Positions 1,975 through 24,157 of a stretch of DNA of 64,000 nucleotides are shown here, one piece after another. The notes beneath the pieces are model-generated. The model worked only from the letters and a program-made list of their open reading frames with translations. It ran no database searches and was not told the DNA's origin. This stretch comes from Macrostomum hystrix (taxonomy: Eukaryota; Animalia; Platyhelminthes). Within the stretch, counting starts at the first letter, position 1, and every line of letters begins with the position of its first letter. A program made the position numbers and the translations under genes. The stretch spans positions 7,936,001 to 8,000,000 of the forward strand of contig CATNEN010000029.1 of assembly GCA_950097015.1 (NCBI GenBank). The letters are read 5' to 3'.

Positions 1975-2153
1975 ATGAAGACAGGCCAATCAATCTCTAC
2001 GACCCCAACGAAGACAGGCCAATCAATCTCCATGACCCAGACGAAGACAGGCCAACCTCTATGACCCCAACGAAGACAGGCCAATCAATCTCTACGACCC
2101 CAACGAAGACAGGCCAATCAATCTCTATGACCCCAACGAAGACAGGCCAATCT
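1975..2153. repeat. 33-bp minisatellite just inside innexin B intron 1
   Basis: gaagacaggccaatcaatctctatgaccccaac, about 5-6 copies. Confidence 0.9.
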
Positions 2154-2176
2154 CGGAGACCACTGTTGTAACTCAC

Positions 2177-2333
2177 CTACATACTGCCGAATGCCAATCA
2201 GCCCAATGAAAAGGAACAGAATGACGCCGGTGAACTGATAGTTGAGCCTGTCAGCGAAGTCGTCGTCGAAGCGAAGCTTAGAGGAGCCGATTCTGCCCAG
2301 CTTGGACAGCTTCCACATGAATGTCGCGTCCAT
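2177..2333 (-). CDS. inx: Innexin B, core N-terminal/TM1 exon (MDATFMWKLSKLGRIGSSKLRFDDDFADRLNYQFTGVILFLFIGLIGIRQYV-G); the rest of the gene lies left of the window
   Basis: Canonical DDDxxDRLNY...RQYVG motif. Phase-1 donor G|gtgagt at 2176, at the same protein position as innexin A intron 1. No matching exon 2 seen in 1-2176. Confidence 0.92.
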
Positions 2334-2470
2334 CTCGCTGCCGTGGCCGCCCTGGACGCCGTGCGAGCCTCCGCCGTGGGTGTGATGGCCGCCTCCGCTG
2401 GAACCGAGGCCGCTGGCTTGGTGAGAGCCTTCTCTCTGATACCCGGCGAATAGAACCTCGCGGAGCGGGC
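2334..2470 (-). CDS. In-frame Gly/His-rich 5' extension of the innexin B exon (GPLREVLFAGYQREGSHQASGLGSSGGGHHTHGGGSHGVQGGHGSE)
   Basis: Open frame continuous with MDATF, GC-rich and coding-like. Candidate phase-1 acceptor ccgcccgcag| at 2471-72; an alternative in-frame ATG lies at 2492. Confidence 0.55.
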
Positions 2471-3034
2471 CTGCGGGCGGTGCGTCAATCATGAGTCAAT
2501 TAACTAATCTATCTATCTATCTATCTATCTATCCCACTATACTAAATCTCTAAGATCTTCTATCGATCTATATTTCAAAATGCTATCTTTCTTAGATTTA
2601 ACTATTTTATCGCGAAGTAAGTTGTATTTGGCTCATTATGAAAATTGTAGTCATAGAGGCTTCAAACGAATGAAATGGTACAACATTGATTGCGGGCGGG
2701 GGCTAACGCAAAAAACGTTTTTGTAATCGACAAACTATTATTTATGACTGAGTGGCTATGAAAATACGCTGGGCGTGAGCCAGCTAATGCTCCAGGTGAA
2801 CTTATATCCATCAATTAGCGATCAATAGAAGACAGTTGATGGGTTCCAAGAGAGTGCGCCTCCTGTCAGTGTGTTTCTGAGATCTAGGGGTCGAGACAAA
2901 GAAGCTCGCAGAGTCGCGAATTGATTGACACGATCTTTTCCCATCCCACAGTAAAGAGCAGAGCGGCTTCCCCGATAAGAGGATAAATCCATCGGAAATG
3001 CTGCACCTGAGCCGTAGATTGAATCTTCCTAGGC

Positions 3035-3076
3035 TTAGGGTTAGGTTTAGGGCTAGGGTTAGGGTTAGGGTTAGGG
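3035..3076 (+). repeat. Short interstitial (TTAGGG)7 telomere-type tract
   Basis: ttaggg ttaggt ttaggg ctaggg ttaggg ttaggg ttaggg. Confidence 0.85.
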
Positions 3077-4274
3077 TCCGGACTTTCTAAAAGCTGTGAA
3101 ATATAGCGGAAACGTTAATATTTCTCGCGAGAGTTGAAATTTATTCTAGGAGACAGAGCTGCAGATACAGCATTTTTGTAGGGGGGAGCGAGGAAGAAGA
3201 AGAGAAGGAAGATTTGAGTGGTGCTTTTTTACCTGCCGTTTGAAATGCCACCTTGGCGACTGTTTTCTGTAATGCTGTGTCAACTGACAAAGTCGACGCT
3301 GCCTGTCGCTGCGGTGGAATTTTGCTGCTCGACTTTTAAAAAGAGTAACTTTTTTCGTTTTATCTTTCTGACGTTGCCTTTAAATGATAGGCAGCTGCTT
3401 TATTTGAATCTGGAGTTTTGCTTGTAGGAGATGCCGGGAAGGGGTAACTTAGCATTGCATTCCGGATGGGATCTGCAGTGGATTTCTCCTGGTGGATGAT
3501 TGGAAAATTGAGATCGCGAGTAGCTGGAGAAGACAGGAGCAGGGATTGTAGTAGCTGAGCTGCTCCGCGACCTGGTCCCGTCCGGCAAACTGGGGCATCA
3601 TAAATTATCAAAAGAATGGGCAAGAGAAGAGGCAAGGGGTAGGCGCGGCTGCCTGGAGGTAGTGCCGCCGCAGCTTGCTTGCTAGCTTTTTCCTCTGATT
3701 TGGACTGCTTTTGGCCTGGCTGGCGTGGAGTTACGGGAAATGCTGCAGCGGGAGGCTCTCTCTCTCTCTGTGTGCCCACCGGCACGGGGTAGGCGGGACA
3801 ATAAATGATTATGGATTAACAATGGAGCCTAGCTGCTGAGGAGGGCGAAGGAGAGGGAAGAAGAGATGCGGTTGTGTGTGTGTGTGTTTGAGTGGGGAGG
3901 ACACAGCAAATGAGAGGGACTCACGAGAGGGCGAGAGGACGACCCAGGGTTGGCTGCTGGCCTCAATAAAAAAACGGAACCTTCGCCGTTGAGAATGCCA
4001 GAGAGAGATGGGACGGAGCAGGAGAGACAAGCCAGCGGCAGAGAAAAAAAAAGATAAAGGAGGAGGGAAGTCCCTTTCCAGGGGGAAGGTTGCGGTCCAG
4101 CCAATTGAGTAGCTACTGGCCAGCATCCAACAGCAGGCAATAGTCTGCTGCCCTGCCTAACAGTGCCAGCAAATAATTTGCCATTTTGAAAAAATCCAGT
4201 GTAAATTAAAAAAATAATTTTTGTTTATGCCTTAATAGAATCAACAAATACCTTAGCTTAGCGCTTAAGGTATA

Positions 4275-4900
4275 ACTCAGAATTGACTGATAAGAGAACT
4301 CAGAATCGACTGAGAGAACTCAGAATCGACTGAGAGAATTCAGAATCGACTGAGAGAACTCAGAATCGACTGAATGAATTTAGAATCGACTGAGAGAATT
4401 CAGAATCGACTGAGAGAATTCAGAATCGACTGAGAGAACTCAGAATCGACTGAGAGAATTCAGAATCGACTGAGAGAATTCAGAATCGACTGAGAGAACT
4501 CAGAATCGACTGAGAGAATTCAGAATCGACTGAGAGAACTCAGAATCGACTGAATGAATTTAGAATCGACTGAGAGAATTCAGAATCGACTGAGAGAATT
4601 CAGAATCGACTGAGAGAACTCAGAATCGACTGAGAGAATTCAGAATCGACTGAGAGAATTCAGAATCGACTGAGAGAACTCAGAATCGACTGAGAGAATT
4701 CAGAATCGACTGAGAGAACTCAGAATCGACTGAATGAATTTAGAATCGACTGAGAGAACTCAGAATCGACTGATGAATGAACTCAGAATCGACTGATGAA
4801 TGAACTCAGAATCGACTGATGAATGAACTCAGAATCGACTGATGAATGAACTCAGAATCGACTGATGAATGAACTCAGAACTCAGAACTCAGAATCGATG
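4275..4900. repeat. 20-bp minisatellite (gagagaactcagaatcgact) with a 180-bp higher-order repeat
   Basis: About 30 copies; the variant tgaatgaattt recurs at 4371, 4551 and 4731. Confidence 0.95.
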
Positions 4901-7511
4901 GAGAGACTGATTATGAATTGATTAAGATGCTGCAACCAGAAAGAACTTTCAATTTCATTAAAAAATTCATATCTTATTCCAAGTTCGTAGTTCTGCAAAG
5001 GGACGTAATAACACCTAAAGAGAAGGAGTTTGCTAAACTAGAAGTTGAGGTGTGAGAGCTGTGGAGTGGTCTGCTTGTTCGCCCATGCCTGATCCACCCC
5101 CAATGTATGATCGGATAGTTGGAGTCAACGGATGAGGGCCCAGATTTTTTAATTCACCCTGTTTTCCGGGCTTGAAAAATGTTGCTTCTGGAGGTCTAGG
5201 CGTACAGTGCATGTTCGTCCGCAATGCGCATTGCGCCGCAGTGTCCATCCACCTGGGTCACAGGAGGAAGTGAGCGACTTCCCTTTCAGCTATGCATATT
5301 TTTTCTTTTGAGCTTCCTGATTATTGAATCTGGTTGGATGGTTTCAATCACAGTGCATGGTGAATAAAAAGCTAGTGCGTTATGAAAACCAACGGGAATT
5401 CATGTTTTAACCTAAGGTTTTTTAATGTCGATGCAGCTGATCTTTACTTTATATGTAGCTTTAAAATTCGAACTTTCTGGACATACTTTCTGAAAATACA
5501 CCGAAATTTCTGGAGAATAAGACGAGTGAACGCTTCGGAATTTAAAAATAAAATACATGAATGTCTACTGGTACAAAGTTAATAAAAAGTAGTATGTTAC
5601 GCGTATCAGTAATGTATCGTACTTGAATTCCCGACAGATTTTAACAAATAAAGTCGGGAATTTATCATAGATGAGCTTCGTGCAGCTTAGAACTTTTAAA
5701 GAAATTAAGTCTGAAGTCAAGCTGGACAAAATGGCTTTCTGCTATAGCATACCTTGTATTTTTGTTTAAGGAAATGAGCATGAAACACGAGGACTCTGCA
5801 ACAGAAACGAAAAAGGGACAACTGCTTACAGACAAAAAACACAATGAAGGATGAAAAATATTAAGGATTCTTTAAATAAGCAAGTCGAAACAAAACAGTC
5901 AGCGGTTAACCGCTCTTGCCGTTCTGATTAACCGTGCAGAAGAGAAAGGATCTATAAAAAACAAGAATAAATTTTATTAAAATATTAAAATATTCAGCTT
6001 AACAAGTGAGGGAGTCATTTAGCAATGATGAATATTTTAGCGGAAAAACAATAGCGTTAGTGTGTGTTTGTGTGCGTCTGTGTATGTTGTGAAAAGTAGC
6101 ATAGCACAAAGAAAACTTATTTATAAGAAAGCAAAAACAAAGCTAAATATGCATGTATATGTAGGCATGTGAACAAATACAGGTGCCCCATCATGGAAGC
6201 TGTTCATTAATATTCAACAGAAAAGATCTAGACCAATGGTTATAACAAAATTGTTGTTAACATAGAGAATAATTTGGTCACTGTTTAAATGAAGCGTACA
6301 ATATTATAAGTAAGTTGGAGAGAATGCCAAATACTGGACCATAGAAATCACTATAATGAGTTAAACAGCATCAATAAGCTTAGGTTGTGATCTGACATGT
6401 GGGTTAACGCAAACTTTCGTCAATATTTTTTCGTTACTGTAACGTTCATTACTTGTAACGTTTGTTACTTTAAATTTTGTTACAGCAACTCTCGTTATAC
6501 TTTCTTAAACTTTCATTATTGTAAATTTAGTTTCTGCAAAAAAATATAACTTGCAGTGAATCACTTCAATTCAGGGCTTTATCAAATGAAATAATGGTAA
6601 TTGCTAAAGCTATAAATAGTTAGATGAATTTGAATTAAAAAACTCGCTATCCTCAGGCACAGGATCACGCGCTTTGGATTAATTAATATAAAGTCTGTCA
6701 TATATCTTGTGGAGGGGAAGATAATATAGATAATTGTAACATCGAATTAAACTATTTTGTCAGAAAAAAAAGCGCTATAGGATCGCAAAAAACATAAAAC
6801 ATTTATCGCACTGCTTAATTAACAGCTGAAAGTTAACAGCGAAATAATCTGTTTGAATGAGACAAGTAGCAAATGTCAAAGGCTGTTTTGGTGCGGTGTG
6901 CTCAGGAGTCAAAATTGGCCTTTATCCCTAGAAACAGAAAAATTCTTTATTAGTTGACTTGCACTTTAACAAAAATGCTTTAAAATGAAAAAGAGAGGTG
7001 ATTAATAAGTTCTGTGTCATTATAGTGAAAGTACAAGAAACCAAAATACAATGATTATGATTACTATATAAACTATCTGGCGCTGTTGTCAGGATTAGAA
7101 TAAGTTTAAGGGGGAAATGAGGATAGTGGGATCTTGCTATGTTTGGCACAGACAAAACAGATAAATATAAGTTTTGGGCCTATGGTGTACAGTCGAAAAT
7201 CTAGGCCTAACTATTTGAAAAAAACTTGTTCGTGCAGTCCCTCTGAGAAGAGCCGGTGAATTTGAGTATTCTAGAACATAATTTCGTGTTAAAGTATGTG
7301 TGCGCGTATCAAAGGCGCCAATAGACGCAAAGTCAATTAACATTGCTAGAAAATAAAGTACAAAGAATTCGATTTTTCCTCTGTCACAATTTCGAGAAAA
7401 AAATATTTCTAATGAGCTTTAAATTCATAGATTAGCTCATATTATTCTTGCCTGGATTTGATAAAGCAGCTCTTAGAACATTAGACCCCGGACACACAGG
7501 GCATGCAACTG

Positions 7512-7517
7512 TTTATT
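7512..7517 (-). promoter_or_regulatory. Candidate polyadenylation signal (AATAAA) of innexin A
   Basis: Plus-strand tttatt about 175 nt past the stop codon. Position only. Confidence 0.4.
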
Positions 7518-7690
7518 TACACGCTAGCTGGGGGTAACCGCACAATTAAATATTCGAGCAACAAAACGGAAACGAGAGACAGGGTGAGAGAAAAATAAGC
7601 AGAGCTATGCGCGAATTATTAAAATAGATGAAACAATACTATGCGCATAAAATATAGCAAACAGGACAAATACATTAGCAGAATCGTCGG

Positions 7691-8099
7691 CTATACTATA
7701 CTAGACCCTCTGTTCACAGACTCTAACAGCCTGTTAATGTCCTCCTCTGTGCCAGTGATCTTGGCCTGTCGATAATTCTTCCACAATGTTGACGCCACAT
7801 CCAGAGCAATGAGGTCGCTAGCCAGGTTGGACACCACCTGGAGAATGAAGACGCCGTCCGCGCCCAGGTTGATGTTAACAAACCTGTTGCAGTCGCGCTC
7901 CTCGGTATTTGAAATTATCTTCATCGCTTTCAGGTACTGCTTGATGAAGGCAACTCGCCTTTGGGGAATTAGTATCTTAAATACCCACACAAGGGTGCTG
8001 GCTAAGGTCAGGACGCCAAGGATGATGAACCAGAACCAGAGGAACACGTAGACCTTCTCAACGAAGTGGTTGATAGGCAGTACGCACTGCAGATCGTAT
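7691..8099 (-). CDS. inx: Innexin A, coding exon 3 (YDLQCVLPINHFVEKVYVFLWFWF...SSIV*)
   Basis: QCVLPIN...EKxYxFLWFW innexin TM4 motif. Acceptor tttttag| at 8100-01 and TAG stop at 7691-7693. The three exons total 151+637+409=1197 nt, i.e. 398 aa plus stop. Confidence 0.96.
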
Positions 8100-9293
8100 C
8101 TAAAAATGACACGAAATACGCGTTCTATACTACTTTGTATGTCACATGCATTGATACCGAACAGAAAATAGTTGTACATCGCGACAATGAATAGTCCTTT
8201 GTCCATAGCTTTTTCTGACAATAAAAGATGGCTACAGGCAGCCCTTGCAGTTCCTTTCTCCGCTGGATATTCTTGGAATTTTTTAAACTATTCATTCCTA
8301 CGCATTTTAGCCGCATTGGCAGTTGCTCCCTTTGGCTCCAAGCAGCTGTCCGCAGATGCAGAGCTGCTCCCCCCTCCTCTCTCCAGTGTCGCCCCGGCGC
8401 CATATCAATGCCTTGCCGAAGCCTTTCCTATGGACAAAATCCCCATTCTATCCTCGGCTTACGGCTCGAAAATCCCAATCGAAGGGGGGGAGAATTTAGC
8501 CAAAAGCCATCCCAGGCTAGGATCAGACGTGGGAGTCTCTCATACTGTCATAAATATTCTACCGAACCAGTCTGATAGATAATGTTGGTATTTGCCGCGG
8601 TTTTCCGATTTGGTCATGCCACCCCTAATTCCACTCGGGCCGTATCAGTTGCTAGGATAGCAGGTCCCCAGTTTCATAGTTTCTATTTTAGCCAGGCCAA
8701 ACTTGGTTAACCATTCAGTGGGCAGAGATATGCACAGTTCTAGCGACTATTTGGAGCGACAGGCGATTAAGCGGCAATTATGGTCCGATGCCTAAAACTG
8801 CATCCTTTGGCAGATGCTGAATCAATAGACCCTCGCATGCCGCTTCCGGACCAACCAGTTCAGCTCTGCTAGAAGGATCGCTAACTATGCGCAAATAATA
8901 ATTATATATTTGCCTTTTCTGTCTGGTAATGTTGTCGCACGAACTGTGCGCGATTCTGTTCGTAATCGTCGGCAGAGAAAAATCGAAAATTTGTTTTAAA
9001 CGCTTTACTTAACAAAATAAACTCTAAAAAACTGCTCTTATAATAAATTGGTGATTTTAGCTCACTAGAAAACTAGTTTGCTAGTTGTTAAACTTTTCTG
9101 TATAAATGACTCTTGAACTTGAATGGCCTTGGAGACTGGAGTAGGACTGAGAGTGGCGGGCCAGAGAACTCAGCGAAGTACGCCGAAGTGCAACTGCTTC
9201 CGTTTTTGCCTTTTGATGAAATTTTCTTCCGATATTCGGCTAAGAGGGAGCGAAAGAGTTTGGTCAAGCCAGGCGAGACTCGCTGACGCTCAC

Positions 9294-9356
9294 CCTGGCG
9301 CATAATGCCCGCACGCATGAGCTCACTGTGTCGCTTGGGAGAAACGATAAAAGCAC
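9294..9356 (-). CDS. Candidate 63-nt symmetric exon inside innexin A intron 2 (G-AFIVSPKRHSELMRAGIMRQ-G in phase 1)
   Basis: Long pyrimidine tract with a 94-nt AG-free zone (9359-9452), acceptor ccccgtcag|, donor AGG|gtgagc. Open in phase 1; has a TGA in the innexin A (phase 2) frame. Confidence 0.5.
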
Positions 9357-9524
9357 CTGACGGGGAACCGGCGACGGAGACCATGTTTGAGGGGGTAATG
9401 AAAAGACGAAAAGACAGAAAAGAGAGGAGCGAGAGAAAAGCAGGGAGGACGGCTTCCCAGTCCGACTGACGCACACGTGAGTGAACACAAGACAAGCCGT
9501 TTTTCTGTTCCCGCATTAACTCAC

Positions 9525-9542
9525 CTGGAGGAGGCTTGGTGC
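9525..9542 (-). CDS. Candidate 18-nt microexon GCACCAAGCCTCCTCCAG inside innexin A intron 2
   Basis: Strong pyrimidine tract cctcctttctgtctccccttttctcccatcagtttctcag|, donor CAG|gtgagt. A competing AG 8 nt upstream would give 26 nt. Confidence 0.5.
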
Positions 9543-10413
9543 CTGAGAAACTGATGGGAGAAAAGGGGAGACAGAAAGGAGGATGCGAGGACTGCATTTT
9601 GCGTCAGTTTTGTTTAGCCGGCGTGAGCTGTGAGGAAAATAGGGCGGGCTAAGACAAACTAAAGCCCATGGAGAATCCCAGCGCGCATGGGAGCGCGACG
9701 GAGCCGAAATGGAAGGGAATTTTTGTAACGGCAGCAGGCAAGGTGGGGCATAAAATAGGCTTTTACGACGGATGCACTAATTGGGAATCGGCTAGTCGGT
9801 AATAAAAATACTGCTCACCACTCGCTGCCGCATCGCGTCCCCTCCCCGTTCGTCTAATTCCCTACGCACCAACCGCCACCCTCCTCGATGTTAGCTCCTG
9901 GGTCTGTGCTCGGTTTCGCAACAGACACGGCTCCTGCTCAGCTTGGCGCCAGAAATAGATTTGGTGGGTTATAGCTTGAGCAATCTAGAGGCTGCTCAGA
10001 CCCGGATCTGTCTCGTATCTAACCAGGCTTCTGCCTGCCCGCCTGCATGTCTGCCTCACAAAGATTGGGACTTAATTAAAAGATCAGATCTGATCCCGAG
10101 GGCAAGTGAAAGGTATTTTAGACAAGCATTTACTGTGCTTTATAGGAACTCTTAGTGATAGATTGTTCAGTACCGCACGCGGTAAAAACTGATGGCGTTC
10201 AAAATTTTGAAGTGTGCGACAGCCAGAGAACTGACCAGAAGTCGAAGGGTTGAAGGGTGACATTAAGAGAGCCTGAAAATAATGTCGAAGGGTCGAATGG
10301 CGTGATTCCTAGAACTTTCTAACATTCTAACTTCCTTGAAAGCGTCGGTTAACAGTCGCTAGTGTCCCAACTTCCATTGTACAGATCCCACAACATGTGC
10401 TTGAGGAACTCAC

Positions 10414-11050
10414 GTTTGTGCCTTGACGCCGACCTTGCGCACCACCAGGTGGCAGTAGGTGACGCGGGGAAAGTTCCCAGTCTCGCGCCACTCCTGGCCG
10501 ATCATGAGGCTTTTAAGCACTTCGTAGCCAAATAAAGTGTCGTTTGAGCCGAGAAATTTTCGCATAAGGTAGATCTGGCCCACTGAGTTGCCAATGAACA
10601 GTAGCCGCACAATGAGAAACAGCATTGTCAGCCGCATTGACGGACTCAAACAGCAGATGAACTTTTCCAACACATTTCGCATGCGGCTATACCGGCGTGC
10701 GGCCTCGGCCTGCTCCTCTAGGGCGGCCACCAGGCACTGGACGGCCTTGCGCCTGAGATCCGTGTCCGGCATGGAAGCGTTTCGCGCGTTCTTGATCAGC
10801 ACTGGCAGCCGGCGAGCGCCCACTCGCCAGATGAGATGAGGCACCCAGGTGATGATGGCCTGGCCAGCCAGCACAATGGCCACCCATTGGTAATAGCTCA
10901 GGTAGGTCATGTCGGCCAGCTGCTCCTTTTTTACAGGTATTTCTTGGTTGGGCAACAGGAAGTAGGTGTTAGACACCCAACAGTAGTTCTCGGCGAAATC
11001 CTCCCATGCTTTGGAGAATTCCTGCGGCACCCAGCACTGGATCGGCTTGC
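10414..11050 (-). CDS. inx: Innexin A, coding exon 2 (GKPIQCW...NYCW...YYQWV...FPRVTYC...KVGVKAQT)
   Basis: ORF 10410..11102 has the innexin motifs QCWVP, ENYCW, YYQWV and FPRVTYC. Acceptor tttcag| at 11051-52 and donor AC|gtgagt at 10413. 637 nt, phase 1 in and phase 2 out. Confidence 0.96.
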
Positions 11051-11718
11051 CTGAAATCATTGCGTTCAGGAATCGTTTGTAAGGCTGTGAAAAAGTTGTC
11101 AATTAGCAAAGAAAATCGGAATAGGAACAAAGAGGAATTCAATGATTTGTGACGAAATTGACCACCTTAAGTTTTCCTACTGTTTCGGATTTTCTTAAAG
11201 TACGAGTATCTTGAACCATTTAAAGTTTGTAGATTAAACTATTTGTAGTTTTCAAAACTCTACTGGTGAGAACAGATGTTTTCAACTGCTACAGAATATG
11301 TCACTGGTTGTAGAGAAAGCGCTGAAAGCTACGAGTACAATCGCGGTCCATTATTTGGATAGACAGTTTTTCGTTTTCAAGTTTATAGTGCCGGGTCAGT
11401 TTTTCAGTTAGTTTATTTTACCGTGAAGATTTAGCTTGTTCTAATGTTACAGGTCCTCGTTGTTGCTTGGATAAACATCCAAAGAAATACAATAACGTCG
11501 AAACGTTTATTGAAAGTCAGAAATACTTGAACAGTGATACCTGATACTCGTACTTGAAAAGTTCGTAATCCTAGACCTAGTCCGTTCCCAGTGTTTAAAG
11601 AAGATTGGAAAGACGAGTAATGCCTTCAAAATGCCTAGTTTTGCTAGGAAACGTATTGCCCCGTATAAACTGCAAAAAAACTTGTACATACGAAACAAGT
11701 CGTTTAAAATCGCCATTA

Positions 11719-12460
11719 AGTACTGTTGACCTAGAAAACCTAAAATTGGTGGTCGACAACACCAAGTACAGTTGACCTAAGAAACCAAGAATTGGTGGTC
11801 GACAACACCGAGTGCAGTTGACCTGAGAAACCGAGAATTGGTGGTCGACAACACCAAGTACAGTTGACCTGAGAAACCAAGAATTGGTGGTTGACAACAC
11901 CAAGTACAGTTGACCTGAGAAACCAAGAATTGGTGGTCGACAACACCAAGTACAGTTGACCTGAGAAACCAAGAATTGGTGGCCGACAACACCAAGTACA
12001 GTTGACCTAAGAAACCAAGAATTGGTGGTCGACAACACCAAGTACAGTTGACCTGAGAAACCAAGAATTGGTGGCCGACAACACCAAGTACAGTTGACCT
12101 GAGAAACCAAGAATTGGTGGTCGACAACACCAAGTACAGTTGACCTAAGAAACCAAGAATTGGTGGTCGACAACACCAAGTACAGTTGACCTGAGAAACC
12201 GAGAATTGGTGGTCGACAACACCAAGTACAGTTGACCTGAGAAACCGAGAATTGGTGGTCGACAACACCAAGTACAGTTGACCTGAGAAACCGAGAATTG
12301 GTGGTTGACAACACCAAGTACAGTTGACCTGAGAAACCAAGAATTGGTGGTTGACAACACCAAGTACAGTTGACCTGAGAAACCGAGAATTGGTGGTCGA
12401 CAACACCAAGTACAGTTGACCTGAGAAACTAAGAATTGGTGGTTGACAACATTAAGTACT
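11719..12460. repeat. 46-bp minisatellite in innexin A intron 1
   Basis: gtacagttgacctgagaaaccaagaattggtggtcgacaacaccaa, about 16 contiguous copies, no spacers. Confidence 0.95.
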
Positions 12461-13525
12461 GCTGGCGTTGTCTAAAGCACCAATGCCAATGCCCGAAGCA
12501 CCAAGAACTGGCGGATTTCAAGGACAAACAAAGTACAAAGGCTAAATTTGGCTTGCCAACAGCCACCTTGTCAGACTGTTTCCTATTCCACTGTAACAAC
12601 TCTCCTATCCCAGTATTCTTGGAGGAAGCTTGAGCAGATGAGAGCTAGTGAATGAGTGATTGGGTGAGCGAGTGAGCGAGTGAGTAGTAGAAGCTCAAAA
12701 GAAAGGGGCGCCTAAATAATTCACAAGTAAATTTTTTGTTCAGACGGAAAGCACTGTCGATCCTGTGCAGTTGCTCCGCTTGTAAATGGCTGTTGTTGGG
12801 CACGTTGAGTTAAGGACCAGAAATATGTGGGACCGGGGAGAAAGAGAGTGAGAGAATGGGAGAGAAAGGGGAGCGGCGAAGAGGAAGGACTGCTAAGTGG
12901 GCGAGGAATCGGTTGATGAAACTATTATTGATCAGAGACTAGACGCGTGTGGTCGGTGCCCACTCCAGACTCAGCTAGCCTATAATGCGAGGACGATGAG
13001 CTATTCACTAAGGGACAGCCGGATGAAGACCAAGGCCTCAACAACGATGGTGTAGGCAGAGTGCTCGGGGTTAGTGGTGGGGAGATTCTCAACCTAGACG
13101 GTGGTCTAGCAGGGTTCTCATTTCTATGCTCATCTGCTTATTATCGCGTCTCCGCACAGATAGGCGCCTGTATAATTTAGGCCTCATCTATTTCCGTCTG
13201 GTTTGCAATCCAGCACGGTCCTGTCCCTTACCTAACATTATTTCTATCTAACTAGCATTCCAAAAATATTTAAAATCTGCTAGCCTATACTAGTCACCTG
13301 GTTCCCCAAAACCTTACTCAAATATGATCCTCATTATCAGAGTCTCGAACGCAAATATCGCGTCACGCAAGTGTACAAGTACACGTAAAACATTTTTACA
13401 TAGAAAAATTACCATCCATTTTACAGATGGGATTTTAGAATCGTGTAGAAGTCCAAGTTGGAAAATAATACTTCAAAGTGTGCACGCGCTGTAGCAATAT
13501 TTGTGCGGCCCGGATGAAAACTTAC

Positions 13526-13584
13526 ATGATCCCTCAGAATACGAAATTGAGAGTTGGTGGGGACTATTGAAAGTGTTTCCGCAA
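13526..13584 (-). CDS. Candidate 59-nt exon inside innexin A intron 1 (CGNTFNSPHQLSISYSEGS)
   Basis: Very strong acceptor cttcatctctttccatttctttttcattttacag| and consensus donor CAT|gtaagt. Confidence 0.55.
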
Positions 13585-16500
13585 CTGTAAAATGAAAAAG
13601 AAATGGAAAGAGATGAAGATCTGGAAGCTGCGGGTACACGGAGGGAAGCTGGGGAGCCGGCTGTGGGAGAATACAAGCGGGATGGGGAGCCCATGGCAAA
13701 CACGGTTAGTAACGAAGTCCCGGGATCAATTTTGGCTCAGCATCCCGTGAAGCGTTCTCGATGCCTGCAGTAACAGCCGCAGCATTTGCCACACTCTCAG
13801 AACAGAACATGCTTCATTTCGAGTGTTGGCGAGGGATAGCTGCAGCAACTGCCGCCTCAGCAGACACAGACGGCCTTCCCAATTCCCACCATTTACCCCC
13901 TCCTGACACCCACCCCCAGTCCGAAGCAGCTGCAGCGAAGTTTGAAATTGGTCATAGTGACTGACAGTGTCAGGAGAGCTGTTTGGAAAGGGAAAGTGGG
14001 ATACAGGAGTGGGTCGGCACTCCCCGACTCCGTACCGTATGCTGCTTCGGATTTTTATTCGTCTCTCAGCTGGCTCCGGACTGGCTCACTTTCCCCACTC
14101 GCCCTTCTCTCTACGTCCCTTATCGCTTGCTCATATCTCGGCCTCAGTCACTTCTGTCTGGCTGTATCACGATTCCCGTTGTCGGGGCTTTTGGCGAACT
14201 CAAAACCGAAAGCGCAAGTGCGAATAGAACACACTTTGACTGTAGCTTTGCCTGCATTGAGACTGCGACCATCAGATTGCAGGAAAACTGAACACGCCAT
14301 TGGATGGAATCTCTGTCCCTAGGTCATAAAAGAGGACTTTCTACTATGGGGATTTTGGCGACACGCTTACGTCTGAGACAGACAGGCGAACAGAAACTTT
14401 CGCATATCTAAAAACTATGGATTTTTTATCCACAATCAGGTGAAGCCATGGCAGGCAGAGAGAGAGAGAATTGCGACGGCTGTTACGCCTAATAGAATGC
14501 GAACTGAGCGACTGTGTGTATGTGTTCAGCGAAAATGCCTTCTGTGCAGCTGGTTGCACCTTCTGGTTGCCGTGCGCTTACCCCTGACCCGGGGAAGATC
14601 CGGCTCTGTCTCCGTGACGGTAGATGAAAATCGGGGATCGAGATGGGCGAACTAGGGAGACACAAAACTCGACTGTACTTTATTGGACTTAGTTCCGAAC
14701 CCCCTGTTCGGATTCTTCCTCGACTTGTGTTGCCATCCGCGGCCTCGTGGACGGGGTAGAAGGTTTAGTGTGGAAGTGGGGATTCTAAAACCAACGGGGC
14801 ATGACAGGCTGCGAGGAGGCAGAGGGACAGTCTGGGAGAGAGTGGAAAAGAGATACGGAGCCATGGAATATCTCCTAGCAGCTTCGTCTTACAACCCTGT
14901 CGTTTTCGACCCCAATCCCGGTCGCATTCCGCTCTCCGTCTCTCTCCTCCCCTACCAGGAGGAGAACGGGAGCAGCGAAAAACCTCTTTTTTGGGATGTC
15001 GGGTTGAGGTGAGGGAGGCATTGCTGCTCCTGTCTTTCACTCGGCAGAGTGGAAATTGATAGCAATAAGAGTCAAAGGCGAAGGAGCTGGAGAGAAACGT
15101 GGAGTTCAGTACAGAAGCAGCTGCTGCAGCTTTGAGGCAGCGCCGGAGTGATTGAGCCACACCCATCCCAGTCGACCGCAGCGGCACACATAGTCCTCAC
15201 ATAGCATTTTCTTCCCGCAGCAGAGTTACTTCATTCTTCTGGCTAAGAAATACCAAAATAGAAGAGCTAGGCCAGGACCAGATATTCCAGACATGGGGAG
15301 AAGAGCTGGCCTGCCCCCTCCCGGGTGGCGGTGATGGTGGTGGCTGGTGGACAGCGGTCTCTGTAGCCGACGCCAGGAAAGCCAGACTATTTTCGAAGGG
15401 GGGCATTCGCTGGTCAGCCGGCACGCAAGCATTTACGAACACACTCTGCCCTCTGTCCCACACACCAGGAAGGTTTACAAAAACCTTCAGAGGTGCCCTG
15501 GCTAGTCCAACCCTTCAGTCTGCTTTCTCTTCTTTGCTTTCCCGCCTCTCTCTACCCGTGTCTTCCTCTTTCTGCCACTCTCCCGAGTGTTCCTGTTTCA
15601 ATTTCCCTCTGATTCTGAGGATCCTCCTCCACCCGCCTCCCGGTTTCCTTGGCTGGCCTAGGTTCCCCTCCGCAACCCTGCCCCTCCCCCCCGAGTGTTG
15701 ATGCACGCGACCGGCGCCTTCTGGCAGCGGGATTTCTATGCCTCTCTTTAAAGGAAATCTCTGCTGTGAGAATGCCGGAGAATAAAAGAAAATGATGGCT
15801 GACCGCTGCTTCTCAGCATTGGCAAAGGTTTGGGTTAATACAAATACGATTTCTGTCTGTCCAGGCCAGGGATTAGCAAATTATATGGGACCGGGCTAGG
15901 CCTAATGACGGCTGAGACGGGGAGCGACTGAGGAAGAGCTAGATGAGGCGCTGATGGGGGATCAGAGAAGCGGGCTTCTTCCCAGCCCGGACCGTCGCTA
16001 TTTAAGCTTGATTCGATTCGTCGATCCTCTGAGGGTTTAGCGGCGGGGTTGGGTAAATTTTGGAATCCTAGGACCGACTGAGAGTTTCTCAATCACCCAA
16101 AACCCGTCTGCCAGAGCCTCGAAACCGTGTACGCCCTCTCTCTTCTTTGGCTTTCTTCTCTATCTGATGGCGAGTCCCTAGTAGTTTCTCTGCTTAACTA
16201 ACAGGATTAAACCCTTGACCTCGCTCCTCCGTGCCGACAAGTCTTACTCTTAACTACTTCCGATCCGAAAGCAAGACCCGGGCTGAGAACAGAATTAGAA
16301 ACTGAAGCATCGAGTAGGCGAGTGGGTCCGTTACGCAATCGGAGGCTGCACGGAGGTAATATCGATTTTTTCGCTATTACGGTTCTGAAAGAATCCTGGT
16401 GTATTGCGGCACTTGATTGGTTTGATTTGAAGTGAGCGAGAAAAAACTGCAGTTGCTCTCTATAGCCCGTTGCATATCATTTAAACAAGTGGAAAAACTA

Positions 16501-16682
16501 TTTTCGACTGACTGTTTTTTTCCTGATGCCCAGTGAAGTATAAATTTCGGGTGGTTTACGTATGCGAAGAAAAATCAAATGCCGAGAGGTATTGGGTTCA
16601 GAGAGAGAGACTGGATAGCCAAACGACAAAATGGCCGTTCACAGAGGGCGCCCTGCCAGGTGAATAAGCCCGTGAAACTCAC

Positions 16683-16693
16683 TTGTCTAAATA
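16683..16693 (-). CDS. Candidate 11-nt microexon TATTTAGACAA inside innexin A intron 1
   Basis: Acceptor ttttctgtcag| and donor CAA|gtgagt only 11 nt apart. Its length supplies exactly the phase shift needed by the exon chain. Confidence 0.35.
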
Positions 16694-17074
16694 CTGACAG
16701 AAAATTTTCCTCATAGAATTGCATTGTGGAGAGCAGCGTAGCAGCGTAGCGCTGTGCAGTGCTACAGCCAGTGTTCTGTGCTTGAAAGCAAAAAACTAGG
16801 AAGAGAGAGGGAGTGAGAAACAGAGCAAAGCATTTTCTGGGGCTTGGTCCAAAATAGATTTTCAGCTAGTACACACAAACGCACAGTATGACGTATAGCC
16901 AGTGTGAGTCACCTAAATATGGACTTCAGGATTTGGTCTTTGGATTTCAAATACCCAGAATGTATATAATTCTTTATCTTCTAAAATATTAAACCAATCA
17001 CCATGAAAATCCAGAACACGGGCTAGTAGTTGGTATTTGAACTACCCCCCTGTGGTCTTTCCCCATGGGGAACA

Positions 17075-17192
17075 ATCCCTGGGTGAGTGTGGCGTCCCCC
17101 CAGTCCATGGACAGAACGGCCCTACGCAGCCTTCGGATGCGACGCGCAATAGCTGCTTCGAAGTTTCAAACGATTATTGCTATTATTATTGT
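17075..17192 (+). mobile_element. 3' fragment of SINE family 2 near the start of innexin A intron 1
   Basis: gtgtggcgtcccccagtccatggacagaac...cgcagccttcggatgcg matches 52824-52880; ATT-rich tail. Confidence 0.7.
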
Positions 17193-17273
17193 TAATTTTG
17201 CTTTTTGCCAGGGACCCGTTAAAATGGAAAAACGATCGCTTAACATTTGGGAGCAAATGTTAGCTGAACCTAC

Positions 17274-17424
17274 CGACATACTGCCGCAGACCAATGACCG
17301 CGATGAACATGATCATGAGACCTCCTGTGAACTGGTAGTTCAGCTGATCGATGAAATCTACTCCATGACCACCGTATGGGGTTTTGAAGATGCGGCCAAG
17401 TTTCAGCACGAATCCGGCGTCCAT
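17274..17424 (-). CDS. inx: Innexin A, coding exon 1 (MDAGFVLKLGRIFKTPYGGHGVDFIDQLNYQFTGGLMIMFIAVIGLRQYV-G); not in the supplied ORF track
   Basis: Manual minus-strand translation gives the innexin N-terminal/TM1 signature DxxDxLNYxxT...RQYVG. ATG at 17424 with an in-frame TAA 6 codons upstream. Phase-1 donor G|gtaggt at 17273 is compatible with exon 2 (G|GC AAG CCG = GKP). Confidence 0.93.
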
Positions 17425-20400
17425 GACTCCGACGCTCGCTTAGCCCGGCCGGACGGCAGTTGGTGTGGGGAGAATTGTAGTTGGGGAGCGCGGCACAGTT
17501 CGGGAATCGTCAGCAGGGTCCAGCCATGCTTGGCCGCGACTCAAGCCTCGCTACTGTTGTTGTACAATTGAAGAGCCTCCGTAGCGCGAATTCGAAATCG
17601 ACGAATTCGAAACCAGCCGATGAAGAAGGGGAAGAATACGAGTGGGAGTGACGGGCGCGCCTGAAGTGCCTCAGCGTCCTCCAATCAATGGCGCCACCAA
17701 TGCTCGACCTGGCGGCGGTGAACGCCTGGCTTTCACTGGGACAGCCTGCGCATGACCGGCAGCCTGTTGGGCACGTTATTTTTCTCCTTCGCCTCCTATT
17801 TTCCTCTCTCGCTCTCCTTCGCTATCCGCTTTCGCCGGTGTCCAGCCTTGGCTTTTTTGGCCAACAAATGCTTCTTTTTGGTATCGCTGAAGATGCGCAG
17901 CCCTCTCTTGGATGTCGGAAAGCTCCCCCAATGGCATAGGCAGATTGCGGGGAAAGGAAGGCGACTGGGGAGGAGACTGCCCACTGTGTGCGTGTGTGTG
18001 TAGATGGAGGAGGGTGGGCTGCCTCCAATGCCGGAGCAAGTAGGGGTAGATAGGGGTTGGGAAGGAAAGCGGCGAGGGGTGGACTGGGAGACGGTCGACC
18101 CAGAGGATATACTTAGCATTTTCTCCAGCGGACCGTTCTGCTCTTCTCTCTCAGCTGGCGCTCCCCCTGCCGCCGCTGCCGGTCCTACTCCGTTTGCAGG
18201 TACCGGCAGAACACATTGGCTATGTTCCCTTCTCAGCTCATGCGAAACAGCAGCCAATCCCAGCCCCTGCTGCGGAGTTCTCTCGCCCTCTTCTCTAACC
18301 CTGGCGCCAGTGCCCGGCCTCACATTCTTTTCAGCAGCCACCCGGCTCTCAGCTCAATCCGGAAAGGAAAAAGACAGGCAGTGTGCGGGGAGGCCCGACG
18401 AATATTCCCCTTCTGGTCTGGGGTAGATTGAAATGGCGCGGGGTAGGGGAAGATTGAGAGGAGGTAGGCAGAAATGGAAGCGATTCGGGGGCGATGGAGT
18501 GAGCGCGCTGGGCGCTGGCTTCAGATTCCCCATTCAACTCTCGCTTTCTGTACCAGTCCGGCTGTACCCAGGGCAACCCGGCGAGCCAGCCTCGGTCGGT
18601 CGGTGCCGAGGGAGGGAGGGACGCTCCAGGGAAAGAGAGATGAGGAACGGAGCCAGCTGAACAATCTGTCCTCTGGGTAACCATACAGACTCGCCTGCTG
18701 CCACTACTCCATCTCTCCCCCTCTGCCTCACCGGGTGGCTCTCTCTGGTAAGCTCTGGCAACTCGAGCGTGCGAAGGAGGAGAGTGTATCGGGGATTTGG
18801 GCGCTTGCAGGACGAGAGGAGAAAGTGATTGGGAAGGGAGCTGAGAGGTTTCCCAAGCATCCTTGTGCTGGTTCCATGCAGTCAATCCAATGCTTGGCAA
18901 TAATTTGTTTCGGCTTTTAGCTCGTATTTCGATTCTGCGATTCTCAAATTTTGGCACAGCACAGAGCTGCCTATTGTGCTTATACAAATTGTAGTTGTGG
19001 CTCTATCTGCACCTGCATCTGTAATCTAGCTTGCCTGTGTTACCAAAGAAAGGATTTTTCTCATGCTCATTTTTCATTCGTGTTAGTGAATGGATGGGCA
19101 TGTTTTTAATCCCTAAATAGCCGTTTCTTTTCATTTCCTGATAGTCGAGAAAACTTTTCGTGCGTCCATTTTTCGAAGCATTAGCCAAGGACTAAACTTC
19201 CATTAGTCTTCTCTTACAGCTGGCCCATTTGCAGATAGCGACTTAAAAGACACTCGTGCTAAAGCCCTGGCGGGTGCGGGCAATGAAAATCACATTTCCC
19301 ACACCGAACAGCCAGACGGTGTCGGGTGGGCTGAGCTGAGCTTGCTAAGAAAGATTAAGAGGCTTAAGTAATATCTTCCTGGCTAAGCCAATGCCTTTAC
19401 TCAAAGCGAATCTGCGTCAGAGCAATCTGTGAGCTGCCCTAGCTGCGGCTCGGAATTCTCTAGAATTATTGTGATTATCTCGGAATTCCGGTGCAGCAAT
19501 TTATTAATCGGCGGCACCCCAGCTCCCTATCAGGACAGACTGCGCCAGTAATTAACTCAAGAAACTTTCGACTTGTCCCAGTCCAAGCGGGAATAAGTCG
19601 CTGGTCTTTGCTCCTGCTTATGGTGCTTCTCACAGTACAGAAGAAGTAGTAGTTGCTTGAGCGTGCTTAAATATTAGAAGTGCACATTTTTGTCATGAGG
19701 CCAATCTTGTTGAACAATACTCACGTGTAGCTGTTCAGTTTTCAATTACCTTCAAACTACTCTACAGCTTCGCTTGCTCGGACTCGTCCCTCGGGGCGGG
19801 GGGTGGTTGGAGCCGGAATGACGGAAGAGGCCTGGAAACAAGATAGAGTGAATGAGAGCGAGGCGCAGGCAGATATAGTGCATAATTAATTTGCAGCGAA
19901 CTGTGCAACCAAACTGCCATCCGGGGCAGCACCAGCACCTCAGACGCTGCACGCCAGTTGCCATCCATAATGCATGCCTCCGATCTTGCGACCCCGCGGA
20001 AGAATGCCTTCATTGCTTTCCTAATATCTCATCCCAATCTGCACGGCGCGTCTTATCGCCCTCCCACCCCGTCAACCCGACTAACCCGCCTACAGCTTCT
20101 AGTCCTAAAGACCAGCACAGCGTCTCAACAGTCGCGGGAGGGTTTAGTGGGGCCATTTGCGCATTAGACAGGAGTTTAGCCCATATATAAGCGATGGGGT
20201 CGCTTAAGTAAATGACGCTGCGAACCTAGGCGGCTGGAAACAACGGATAAGCCGCCGCCGCATCCTCCTCCCACACACTGCAACCTGGCGAGGTCCGAGG
20301 CGCTAAAGCCTACCTAACCCGACCCCGTGTCCGCCACTGTCAAAACCTAAACTCGAACAGAAGGAAGGAAGGGGCGAATGAGAATCTGATAAGAGGCGGC

Positions 20401-23400
20401 TCAGGATGCACCGGCTAAAAACTCGCGCGCATTATTGGGTGACTCGATGGAACAGGCCCGCGAGATGCTGGCGGCGAGAGAAAATTTATGGGATAATTTT
20501 AGTTGTTAACAGGACGAGAAGGGGAGTGAAGTTGTGAGCCTCGGTAACTCCTCTCAGGCAAGTTGGAGAATCCCTTGGGGAATTATTATGTCAATAACTT
20601 CCCGACTGAAATTATCCCTCACTGGCGACCGTTTCCCTCGCTCATCCCCACCTCCTCCCAGAGGGAGATGGAGAAAATTCGGACTAAATTGGAGTAGGAT
20701 TGGAAGACCAGCAGTTCTCGCTCATCCCGCTGGCCGGCAGTCGCCTGCTGGGACTTCGATAGCGAGGGATGTCAGAACTCTGGTAGTTACCAGGCCCGGG
20801 TGTTGGGTAGAGTGGCCCGAGGCGCTCCCAAGTCCGCCGCCCCCGTTCCCTGTTCCTCCTGCTTCACTCTTGGAAATCTGATTTCTGCTCTCCAACTGCT
20901 AGCCGATCCTCCCGGGGGGGGAACCGCAGCGTTGATGGCGGAAGGCGAGGTCCGCCTCACGGCTCCGGTTGTCGACGGCATGGGAACAAATTAGCCAAAT
21001 CCTCCTCTTCCCTATTCTGTGGGCGAGTCCGCCTGTAGCAGCAGGTTCCTCTCGTGTTTCCAAGCCGATTCATTCCTCGCGGCCTTCCGTCCAACCGCTC
21101 TTGAAGGCAGTCGCTGCAGTCCACTTAAGCCAAGGATCTTCCTGGGTCACTTCTCCAACTTCCTCTAACTCTATTCTGCCTAAAATGCAATCTACAGTGA
21201 ACGATCTGCAGTCCTGCGGCCCCCGCACTGTCTGTCTGGCTGGCTAGCCGAGTTAACAAAAAGATACCTTGACGATTTTTTCTAGCTTTTCGTGCGACAG
21301 CTAGAACATAGACAGGTCTCGCACCGGACTGCTAAAGCGTATTGACAGTTTCCCTTCCGCCACCAAAATCAGCCCCATTGCCCGGTTGTAGTGTCAACTC
21401 AGGACAGGCCTTTCTGGGGGACTAGTCGTATATACTATAGCAGAGAGGACCTCCTCACTCCACTCACTCAGAACGCCCATGCGGCCGGCCCACTCAGCCC
21501 TGCCGATCTAAAAATAGACCTGGTGGCCAACACACCCAGCCGCCGCACACCGGCTACAGTGGCCAAGTAGAAAGAAACGGCATGCACTTTTAAATGCGAG
21601 CTGGGAAGAGCACTGGCCACAATAGAGAATATAAGAGAGGAAGAGGTAAAGAGAAGAGAGGGGGATTGGGTGGGTAGGGAGAGTACCGGGGCCGTCTTGA
21701 GTTGAGATGAGACCTCTCAAATTTTTTTCCGCATTGATCCAACCACTTGTCTTTGCCAAGCCTTCATGCAGACCCGCCTACCAAACAACATTCTCTCCCC
21801 GCATTCCCTTTGGCTCCACATTTCGGCCCTCTGCTCTCCACTTTTCTGCAGCCTTCGAGCCGACAAACTTTCTACCGATATGAGAAGAAATAATAAATTC
21901 AGCATTGGAATTCAATACCTACTGAGGCAACATATGCCAAGCAACAATGACAGCCCTGGTAGGCGGGTTTTCTGAAAATTCACACTCAACCGGCATCTAG
22001 TTGGGTGAGGTGGATGCATTTGCTGAGCAGATATTTTGCTTGGCTAATATGCAGCTAATAGTTTCTGTTTGCCCTGGCTACCACTCCGAAGCTAAGAGTG
22101 GACAACTACTGAGCACTATGGCACATCCCAGATTCAGCATCACCTCAACCTACCCCCCTCACAGCCCCCCTCACAGCACCCGTTATATACTGGCAACGTG
22201 GTGCACGGAGGCTTTGGAGAAGGCAAAATTGATGGCCCGGAAAGAGGTGAAGAAGAAGCGAGCAAGGGTAGAGAGTCTCCTGGAGCTGGCCCTCCTTCGT
22301 TTGGATCGACAGTCAGGCTCATTAATTATTTATGAGAGCCCATGAGCGCGCCAAAATTACCTTGGCAGTTTTTTCGGCCCATTTCTCACGCACACATGCG
22401 CTCCTCTTCCCTTCATTGGTTGGGAATACACTCCCGAACCAGCCGCTCCCTCAATCACTTTGGATGCATTCGCCTTTTATTGATGTGCTCAAAGCTCCCC
22501 ATCGTTTTCTGGTGCTCAACAAGAAAAAAATACTGACTTTCTTGACAAGGTGAGTGAAGTCGGAGCAATGAGGGACAACCAGAGCTCTCCTGGGTGTACT
22601 ATTACCGGAGGGAATCTGTTGCAAGCTTTGGTCCGAGCTGCACTCGAAAACTCTCATCCCCGATTCGGAAGTTAGAAGAACATTCAGCAAAGAGGCCGGG
22701 CATTCACAGCCTGAGTGCAATTTAGTCCAGTCAGAGCAGGTCTGGCAACTGGTCCATGCTCAGGAGCGCCCAGGCTTTCGAGTCGCGTGCACTACAGGCT
22801 CAAACAATTTTTCTGGCTGCTCGTGTCCTTGAACTGGATTAAGGCACTAGGTCTCATGCTCCCTAAAATTCAGTTCGGGAGCACCTGCTGGTTTGAGCTT
22901 GGAATTGTGTTTCTGGATCGCTAACCAGCTGTAAATTGTAGGTGGCAGCATTAGCTTTTCTAGAATAGTTCATGGGCTTGGCAACCACTTATCTATGAAC
23001 TAAAAACTGCTTGATTTGCTTCTGATTTGGCGACCGAAAAGGCAGATGGAATCTGCATTCACATTTAGGAAAAATCGGTTAGGTTTCTGTGCCTCGAGTC
23101 AATTTGTTTAATTTGCTTGTTTATCGCACACGTTTGCGACATTGTTTCCGGAATGTCTTCATCAAAAACATCCCAGATTTCTGCTTTAAAGTAGCAGAGC
23201 ATTGTAACTGAGCCCCTACTTTAATTAATTCGGCCCGAGAAGAGAAGTGCTACAAGCTAGTTTATTAGGCCGAATCGAACGGACCCACTTAGATAGAAAT
23301 AAAGGAGCTGGAGTCAACAAAGCCTCCCCAGCTTCATCCGAGATCCACTCCTCTACCAGTAATGAAACTGAATGACGACGCAAATATTTTTTGACAACCT

Positions 23401-23974
23401 CGCAGCGAAGAGAATGGGACTCGCAGCGCCTATATATTTCAACTAGTGAAAGTGCCTAGCTGTAGTCCTTTCCTTTCCGTGTTGCCCCTTGCCCTGGGAA
23501 GGGAGAAATAACAGGACGTCCGCTGTCACTTCTTGTAGCAGCTGACTGTGTCACACGGAAGCGATGGGCCTACATCTTCTTCATAATTACTAGTGAAGCA
23601 ATTCGATGCACTTACACTTCTCCATCGAGGGGATTCTACAGGCCCCGACTGTCGGTGAAACTGCCTGACTGACAGCTTTCCATTTTTTATTCTAAGCCGC
23701 TTGCTCGACTAAGTCTCTTAGATAGTTTTGACAAGTTAAAAGAATCCCACTTTCCCATGTCAAGATGCTAGCCCGTCACTAGAAGTCCAAAGGACAAACT
23801 TTCAAGGCGTTTTTTATGCGCGAAATAGTATTTGCAAAACTCCCTTTTCAAAAACTGTATGCGGTCTGACCCGAATGTCGACAATATTCTAACTGCTCTA
23901 CTTACAGCAGGCAATCGTGAGAATAGGGAAGTTTTGAAGCTAAGAGGTAGACGAAAATTAGAACAATAAATTAC

Positions 23975-24136
23975 CTGCTCATTTTCCAGATAATTTTCGA
24001 CGTAACTTCCAATGACTTGACAGTCGTGTAACTCGGCAGATTCTTGTTGCAAGTGAGTAAGTATGGAGCTACCGTTGCGAAGGCTGCTGCCGCGCCATGT
24101 CTTCTTTGTAGAGGTTTCCTTAGCAACAGTTGCCAT
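23975..24136 (-). CDS. Candidate first coding exon (MATVAKETSTKKTWRGSSLRNGSSILTHLQQESAELHDCQVIGSYVENYLENEQ)
   Basis: Part of ORF 23768..24211, ending at a phase-0 donor CAG|gtaatt (23974). In-frame ATGs at 24136 and 24184. Overlaps the X-box cluster. Confidence 0.4.
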
Positions 24137-24157
24137 AGTAACAGTCGTCTTAGCAAC
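24114..24157. promoter_or_regulatory. Three tandem RFX X-box motifs
   Basis: GTTTCCTTAGCAAC (24114), GTTGCCATAGTAAC (24129) and GTCGTCTTAGCAAC (24144), each matching RTHNYYWTRRNRAC, with exact 15-bp spacing. Confidence 0.6.

Follow-up and report, generated by a model that had tools for sequence, protein, structure and literature searches.

Two innexin genes, here called innexin A and innexin B, lie in tandem on the minus strand of a 64,000-nucleotide (nt) stretch of the genome of the flatworm Macrostomum hystrix (contig CATNEN010000029.1, abbreviated C29, positions 7936001–8000000 of a 220 Mb assembly; hereafter the window). We find that innexin B has two real alternative first exons, one of them 22 kb off across its paralogue innexin A, both spliced to an acceptor at 2470 that opens a conserved N-terminal extension. 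The explanation we favour, and consider probable though well short of certain, is that the proximal first exon gives a GUG-initiated extension of ~53 amino acids (aa), while the distal one gives the ordinary protein beginning MDATF. Positions are those of the window, and features lie on the minus strand unless stated otherwise.

RNA evidence was drawn from de Bruijn assemblies of four runs belonging to one single study, the contigs of which were mapped over 2150–8149. We took the four runs as RNA because their contigs total ~40 Mb against a 220 Mb genome and are spliced at GT..AG borders. An earlier note on this DNA had placed a phase-1 acceptor at 2471 before the innexin B exon, and this acceptor is real: contigs of all four runs break exactly there (AG at 2472–2471, exon start at 2470), cover 2176–2471 and extend into exon 2. 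The assembly graph splits at 2471 into exactly two upstream sequences. The first, found in four runs, shows 30 letters that match 24691–24720 exactly and uniquely in both the window and the genome, giving the junction 24690>2470. The second, found in runs X1 and X4, gives the junction 3233>2470, with GT..AG borders and 762 nt skipped. Innexin B thus has alternative 5′ exons, ending at 24690 and 3233, which share one downstream exon encoding its core N-terminus.

The distal first exon (24690–24913) is non-coding and ends at a CAGG/GTAAGT donor. Its 5′ end is approximate, as the loose contig part behind 2471 measures 223 nt in three runs (reaching 24913 provided it is contiguous), while in the remaining run it is 288 nt long; the exon sequence is single-copy in the genome. 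Intron 1 of this isoform (2471–24689, GT at 24689–24688) is 22,219 nt long and contains the whole of innexin A (17424–5784), on the same strand and with all of its exons and its 3′ end, so that overlapping pre-mRNAs of the two innexins are produced from one locus. Overlapping pre-mRNAs, and a transcript skipping every innexin A exon, had both been foreseen in the earlier note; the distal isoform is such a transcript, yet it carries a TGA in the innexin B frame at 24708–24706, six codons before the junction, and for this reason encodes only the MDATF form. Between that TGA and the ATG at 2333, the distal leader holds no start or near-cognate codon in the innexin B frame. Both the donor and the position of the TGA are kept in Macrostomum lignano, in a collinear exon at ~1107–1249 of contig L008. 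At the exon's 5′ edge, a conserved element (24910–24943, CCAATTAAATT..CAATCGGTRTTAACGAG) shows 88.6% identity over 35 nt to L008 1076–1110; the contigs of the distal exon start just inside it, and it is likely a core promoter or homeodomain site. Read-through of the TGA from an upstream open reading frame (uORF) in the distal exon (in-frame ATG, MHTFQKSEKADIFIW-TGA) was considered and dropped, M. lignano having no ATG in that frame.

The 137 nt that follow the acceptor (2470–2334) comprise a split Gly codon and 45 further codons (PLREVLFAGYQREG, then a Gly/His/Ser-rich part) in frame with the core ATG. Compared with the M. lignano orthologue, they show six full-codon differences, all of them third-position synonymous, no non-synonymous change and one 3-nt insertion or deletion (indel), and the split first codon has one further synonymous change; introns of the two species align in short blocks only. 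Judged by this pattern of conservation, 2470–2334 is protein-coding, and innexin B would accordingly exist in a form with a longer N-terminus. The synonymous divergence between the two species is itself uneven, at 6 of 45 codons in the extension and 23 of 52 in the core (2333–2178), which hints that the extension is under a further constraint at the nucleotide level.

The same-strand A-then-B pair occurs in four paralogous regions of the M. hystrix genome: the present C29 locus, C1:4535554–4565221, C7:4535107–4551794 and C38:2036694–2054275. Three of the B copies keep the extension together with the short GTG-bearing segment described below, and the C38 copy has lost both, with stops in the extension region. 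Between the C1 paralogue and M. lignano L010, 10 of 14 differences in the extension fall at third positions. The C1 and C7 copies and L010/L011 all keep the phase-1 CAG/G acceptor and the motif G-x-[LVF]-R-[DE]-[VA]-[LF]-F-A-G-[YFC]-[HQ]-x-[KE], with most third positions changed. Two genomic contigs of other flatworms (L019 and L020) keep the acceptor and Q-[LI]-R-D-I-L; the R-[DE]-[VIA]-[LF] core and the phase-1 acceptor are common to the paralogues and both of these contigs. In neodermatan gene models (schistosomes, Paragonimus, cestodes and a monogenean), Gly/His/Ser-rich open reading frames precede MDATF. An mRNA contig of another flatworm (L009), in which a TGA is followed by 52 open in-frame codons without an AUG, was set aside because it resembles the Macrostomum extension too weakly. 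Protein searches found no product of the RNA contigs of M. hystrix itself.

The proximal first exon (3233–3786, donor GGCAG/GTAAAA) lies outside innexin A. One contig runs unbroken over 3232–3786, placing the 5′ end of the exon at least at 3786, and the exon body is covered in four runs; within the mapped interval, 3787–5783 is without any RNA contig. Its frame stays open as far back as a TAA at 3338–3336 and contains no in-frame ATG, and the collinear proximal exon of M. lignano likewise has none. Taking both observed leaders together with the collinear M. lignano exons, no in-frame AUG occurs between the nearest upstream stop and the MDATF ATG. At the upstream edge of the exon, where the contig ends at 3786, a 44-nt element (3785–3828) is 97.7% identical to M. 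lignano and is likely a promoter or transcription start site element. The 762-nt intron that separates this exon from 2470 holds an interstitial telomere-like (CCCTAA)n run and a (TAGA)n run (3024–3085 and 2494–2540), and a long (TAGA)n run also lies just upstream of exon 1 in the C38 paralogue.

The proximal exon ends ...gcc AAG GTG GCA TTT CAA ACG GCA G/gt, and the GTG at 3251–3249 (context gccAAG-GTG-G, 19 nt before the donor) is the candidate start of the extended proteoform. With the same spacing of exactly 19 nt to a GTA donor, the string AAR-GTG-GCA-TT is found again in the M. lignano orthologue, in the C1 and C7 copies of M. hystrix and in both M. lignano paralogue copies, 0.6–1.2 kb upstream of the acceptor (L007/L008 and L010/L011 in M. 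lignano), and in all copies the GTG is flanked by A at −3 and G at +4. The sense strand upstream of the C38 copy lacks the motif over the 20 kb scanned. When all 2,975 windows of 26 nt in the 3 kb upstream were scored, 3255–3230 ranked first with 20 of 26 positions shared in both paralogues (next best, 17; background, 14–15), and it is the sole stretch of these 3 kb kept by all three paralogues. BLAST between the paralogue 5′ exons gave no nucleotide similarity, and the GTG segment emerged only from the window scan and from the targeted search for the motif; exact 8-mers shared across the paralogues number eight, which is at chance level. L010/L011 have an in-frame TAG five codons upstream of the GTG and no AUG between the two, and any start is therefore confined to the short GTG stretch. 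From this conservation we infer that GTG 3251–3249 is a conserved GUG start, and it probably initiates the extension of ~53 aa.

We propose that promoter choice would decide which protein is made. From the distal first exon (~24913–24690), splicing over innexin A would yield an mRNA translated from ATG 2333 into the ordinary MDATF innexin. From the proximal first exon (at least 3786 to 3233), the GUG in its CAAR-GUG-G setting would start a long form, adding (M)AFQTA, the split Gly and the 45 conserved codons (2468–2334), or ~53 residues, before MDATF. In the long form, a short conserved motif, L-R-E-V-L-F-A-G-Y, would be carried by a tether rich in Gly, His and Ser in front of the pore-lining N-terminus, where it might influence gating. 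Leaky scanning past the GUG would still allow the short form to be made from the proximal mRNA.

Several observations weigh against this explanation. The RNA support comes entirely from contigs of a single study's four runs, the positions of the two transcription starts are approximate, and contigs lose rare isoforms, among which there could be an AUG-bearing third partner of 2470. The support for GUG use is entirely its conservation. The proximal leader holds four upstream ATGs with short uORFs, which would lessen scanning to the GUG, and the five codons after GUG-GCA vary between the orthologues, with two non-synonymous changes, pointing to weak constraint there. Finally, the annotated M. 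lignano proteins and Dugesia innexin-4 (Q2L6N0) begin at MDATF.

These points bear on the possibility that the extension is coding but is started at an ordinary AUG, in a further upstream exon of a rare or tissue-specific isoform. Because the coding signature is present from the very base that follows the acceptor, coding must extend upstream; contigs show the presence and not the absence of isoforms; and neodermatan gene models do begin their extensions at AUG. Yet only two branches reach 2470 in the four runs, no conserved block between 24690 and 2471 has the look of an ATG-containing exon that ends in a phase-1 donor, the M. lignano annotation starts both paralogues at MDATF, and the presence of CAAR-GTG-GCA-TT across the paralogues, at a constant spacing to the donor, would be left unexplained. 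We regard such an exon as unlikely. An AUG supplied by a spliced leader (SL) at 2470 is not supported, as the contigs contain no third branch; the M. lignano SL, which we take to end in ATG, would be out of frame with the conserved extension frame. Splicing of innexin A exon 1 (phase-1 donor at 17274) to 2470 was also rejected: the phases fit, but no contig joins the two and the resulting membrane topology would be implausible. If 2470–2334 were instead an untranslated leader acting at the RNA level, through structure or translational control, with the protein always starting at MDATF, then the lack of an in-frame AUG in either observed mRNA, the absence of any ATG in any frame over the 137 nt and the reduced synonymous divergence noted above would be accommodated. 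We find this improbable, since every substitution between the orthologues is third-position synonymous, indels come in multiples of 3, the peptide motif is preserved in old paralogues and in other genera with nearly every third position changed, and the acceptor phase is kept everywhere, a pattern unexpected for an RNA element. Macrostomum uses spliced-leader trans-splicing, and the 24690>2470 contigs are de Bruijn products of one study in which 30 letters of the upstream part are shown, so an assembly chimera or trans-splicing product in place of a 22 kb cis intron was also weighed. It is very improbable: the junction falls exactly at a CAGG/GTAAGT donor and a CAG/G acceptor, both exons lie in order on the same strand of the same contig, the junction is seen in all four runs, the upstream exon is single-copy and so is not an SL gene, and its donor is kept at the collinear place in M. 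lignano.

The earlier note had offered another route to 2470, namely that five minus-strand segments threaded through the innexin A introns and spliced to this acceptor would add ~150 aa to innexin B. The segments do exist (24136–23975, 16693–16683, 13584–13526, 9542–9525 and 9356–9294), with AG/GT flanks, and when joined in a local script they give a stop-free frame of 450 nt before the core ATG. Under strict splice-site rules, which reduced the sites of the 22 kb to 53 donors and 220 acceptors, we counted stop-free chains with four internal exons that reach 2470 in phase 1 and found 80,147 in the real sequence, 58,015, 106,855 and 134,211 in three shuffles and 16,310 on the opposite strand. 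The chain carries no weight by itself because the real count lies within the shuffle range. No contig of the four runs holds the junction 9294>2470 or has ...ATGCGCCAGG ahead of 2470 (the other four junctions of the chain, like read depth over the five segments themselves, fall outside the mapped interval), and all five segments are removed as intron in the distal isoform. Comparison with M. lignano showed that exon lengths, phases and splice sites are not kept. The proposed first exon (23975–24136), which lies 554 nt downstream of the real donor, the 11-nt exon (16683–16693) and the 59-nt exon (13526–13584) have no collinear match, and the ATG region of the first (24114–24157) has no BLAST-level match in that species; for the 18-nt exon (9525–9542), M. 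lignano lacks an 18-nt AG..GT unit. The 63-nt exon (9294–9356) is a partly conserved non-coding stretch, in which a 15-nt match at the 5′ end is followed by frame-breaking indels of 5, 3, 6 and 5 nt and the GT donor is missing. We consider the five-exon model refuted. The idea of an N-terminal extension survives through the conservation of 2470–2334, at ~53 in place of ~150 aa and with neither the chain nor an ATG at 24136. The case is one of a post hoc microexon chain at chance level although its target acceptor was real.

The innexin N-terminus lines and gates the pore, and the layout proposed for innexin B has partial parallels elsewhere. Isoforms of UNC-7 in Caenorhabditis elegans carry 24–168 aa before transmembrane segment 1 (TM1), and the longer N-termini alter voltage dependence and rectification, with ball-and-receptor action as the proposed mechanism (PMC7455501; PMC2694797). 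These isoforms are ascribed to alternative splicing, and the length and charge of the UNC-7 N-terminus set the rectification of electrical synapses (PMC7455501). As with UNC-7, one innexin gene would make proteins that differ only before TM1, and the extension would resemble that layout in setting a short conserved charged and hydrophobic motif on a flexible tether. Unlike UNC-7 as described, the observed leaders of innexin B are without an in-frame AUG and GUG is the likely start. In Drosophila, alternative 5′ exons of shaking-B (N+16 and lethal) give different N-termini and rectifying electrical synapses (as cited in PMC7455501). Innexin B shares with shaking-B the use of alternative 5′ exons of one innexin gene, but whereas the N-terminus is replaced in shaking-B, innexin B keeps its core N-terminus and would have a piece added in front.

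Conserved non-AUG N-terminal extensions are known in other genes (PMC5666671; a phylogenetic approach is given in bioRxiv 10.1101/2022.05.02.490320). Innexin B is like them in showing coding conservation in frame before the annotated AUG, in lacking any in-frame AUG there and in having a conserved near-cognate codon in good context. It differs in that this codon lies in one exon and most of the extension in another, with the choice of first exon deciding whether the extension would be made. A full-text literature search found no publication containing both ‘innexin’ and ‘non-AUG’.

In the cholinergic gene locus, VAChT is nested in the first intron of ChAT, and a shared first exon is the defining feature. 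The innexin pair is similar in that a gene of related function lies on the same strand within its neighbour's first intron, downstream of a remote non-coding first exon. Unlike the shared first exon of the cholinergic locus, the remote exon at 24690 was seen joined to innexin B, the mapping not having reached the 5′ end of innexin A. The A-then-B order in four regions and the position of A inside intron 1 of B mean that the pair could therefore be a co-regulated unit of the cholinergic kind. The wider proposal, that a flatworm innexin clade makes an extended subunit from a GUG kept through ancient duplications, that promoter choice decides its production and that the A/B pair is perhaps co-regulated in this way, is one on which we hold the balance even.

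Flatworms are used to study the part that gap junctions play in regeneration and in neural signalling. An extended flatworm innexin, if true, would be an unrecognised subunit type, probably missed by annotation for want of an AUG, and current Macrostomum gene models that start at MDATF may truncate the innexin B protein. It would also provide a natural example of promoter choice turning a non-AUG proteoform on or off.

Both genes belong to the innexin family according to Pfam (profile PF00876, cut-off 25 bits): exon 2 of innexin B scores 174.8 bits and exons 2 and 3 of innexin A 164.7 and 90.8 bits, all above the cut-off, while innexin B exon 1 alone covers profile positions 1–29 at 20 bits, which is under it. 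In protein searches, the nearest proteins are M. lignano innexins, with 95% and 87% identity, and the gene order A, B, a 598-aa gene and a dynein heavy chain is identical in M. lignano. The core part of innexin B exon 1 (2177–2333, MDATFMWKL...RQYV, ATG at 2333–2331) ends in a phase-1 donor and is spliced in RNA contigs on to ...GCAAGCCCATCCAGTGCTGG of exon 2; orthologue proteins begin MDATF. Later exons of innexin B lie before the start of the window, at C29:7933172–7933888 and 7928785–7929228. Innexin A encodes 398 aa, a length equal to that of M. lignano P0040, in three coding exons. Exon 1 (17274–17424, MDAGF...RQYV, phase-1 donor) is 86.8% identical to L008 9998–10163, and exon 2 (10414–11050) is joined at its 3′ end to 8099 in RNA contigs. 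Exon 3 (5784–8099, Pfam positions 234–333) consists of the coding part 8099–7691 and ~1.9 kb of 3′ untranslated region; contigs cover it down to ~5784.

A six-codon uORF (ATG GCT GGA CCC TGC TGA, 17527–17510) sits ~100 nt upstream of the innexin A ATG and has a counterpart of equal length and position in M. lignano (ATG GCT AAA CAC TGC TGA), within a conserved block. This suggests that the innexin A leader reaches at least to the uORF and may be under translational control. The introns of innexin A and the sequence upstream also contain TAAT/ATTA-rich blocks with 72–92% identity to M. lignano (9809–9643, 15086–15024, 15964–15836, 20708–20568, 21752–21687, 22366–22302 and 23561–23523). These blocks, together with 13837–13803, were considered as hidden exons and dropped, as they have no conserved AG/GT borders; all eight are rich in TAAT-type motifs and look regulatory, and the seven listed are likely enhancers of the locus. 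Two tandem repeat arrays are also present, a long one in innexin A intron 1 (11598–12471) and one with a ~42-nt unit directly 3′ of the innexin B exon 1 donor (1985–2170). Just downstream of innexin A exon 1, 17133–17081 matches M. lignano L007 8948–9000, upstream of innexin B exon 1, and the same element (53–76 nt) matches the paralogous locus at L011 4596–4671 in opposite orientation; it is probably a dispersed repeat.

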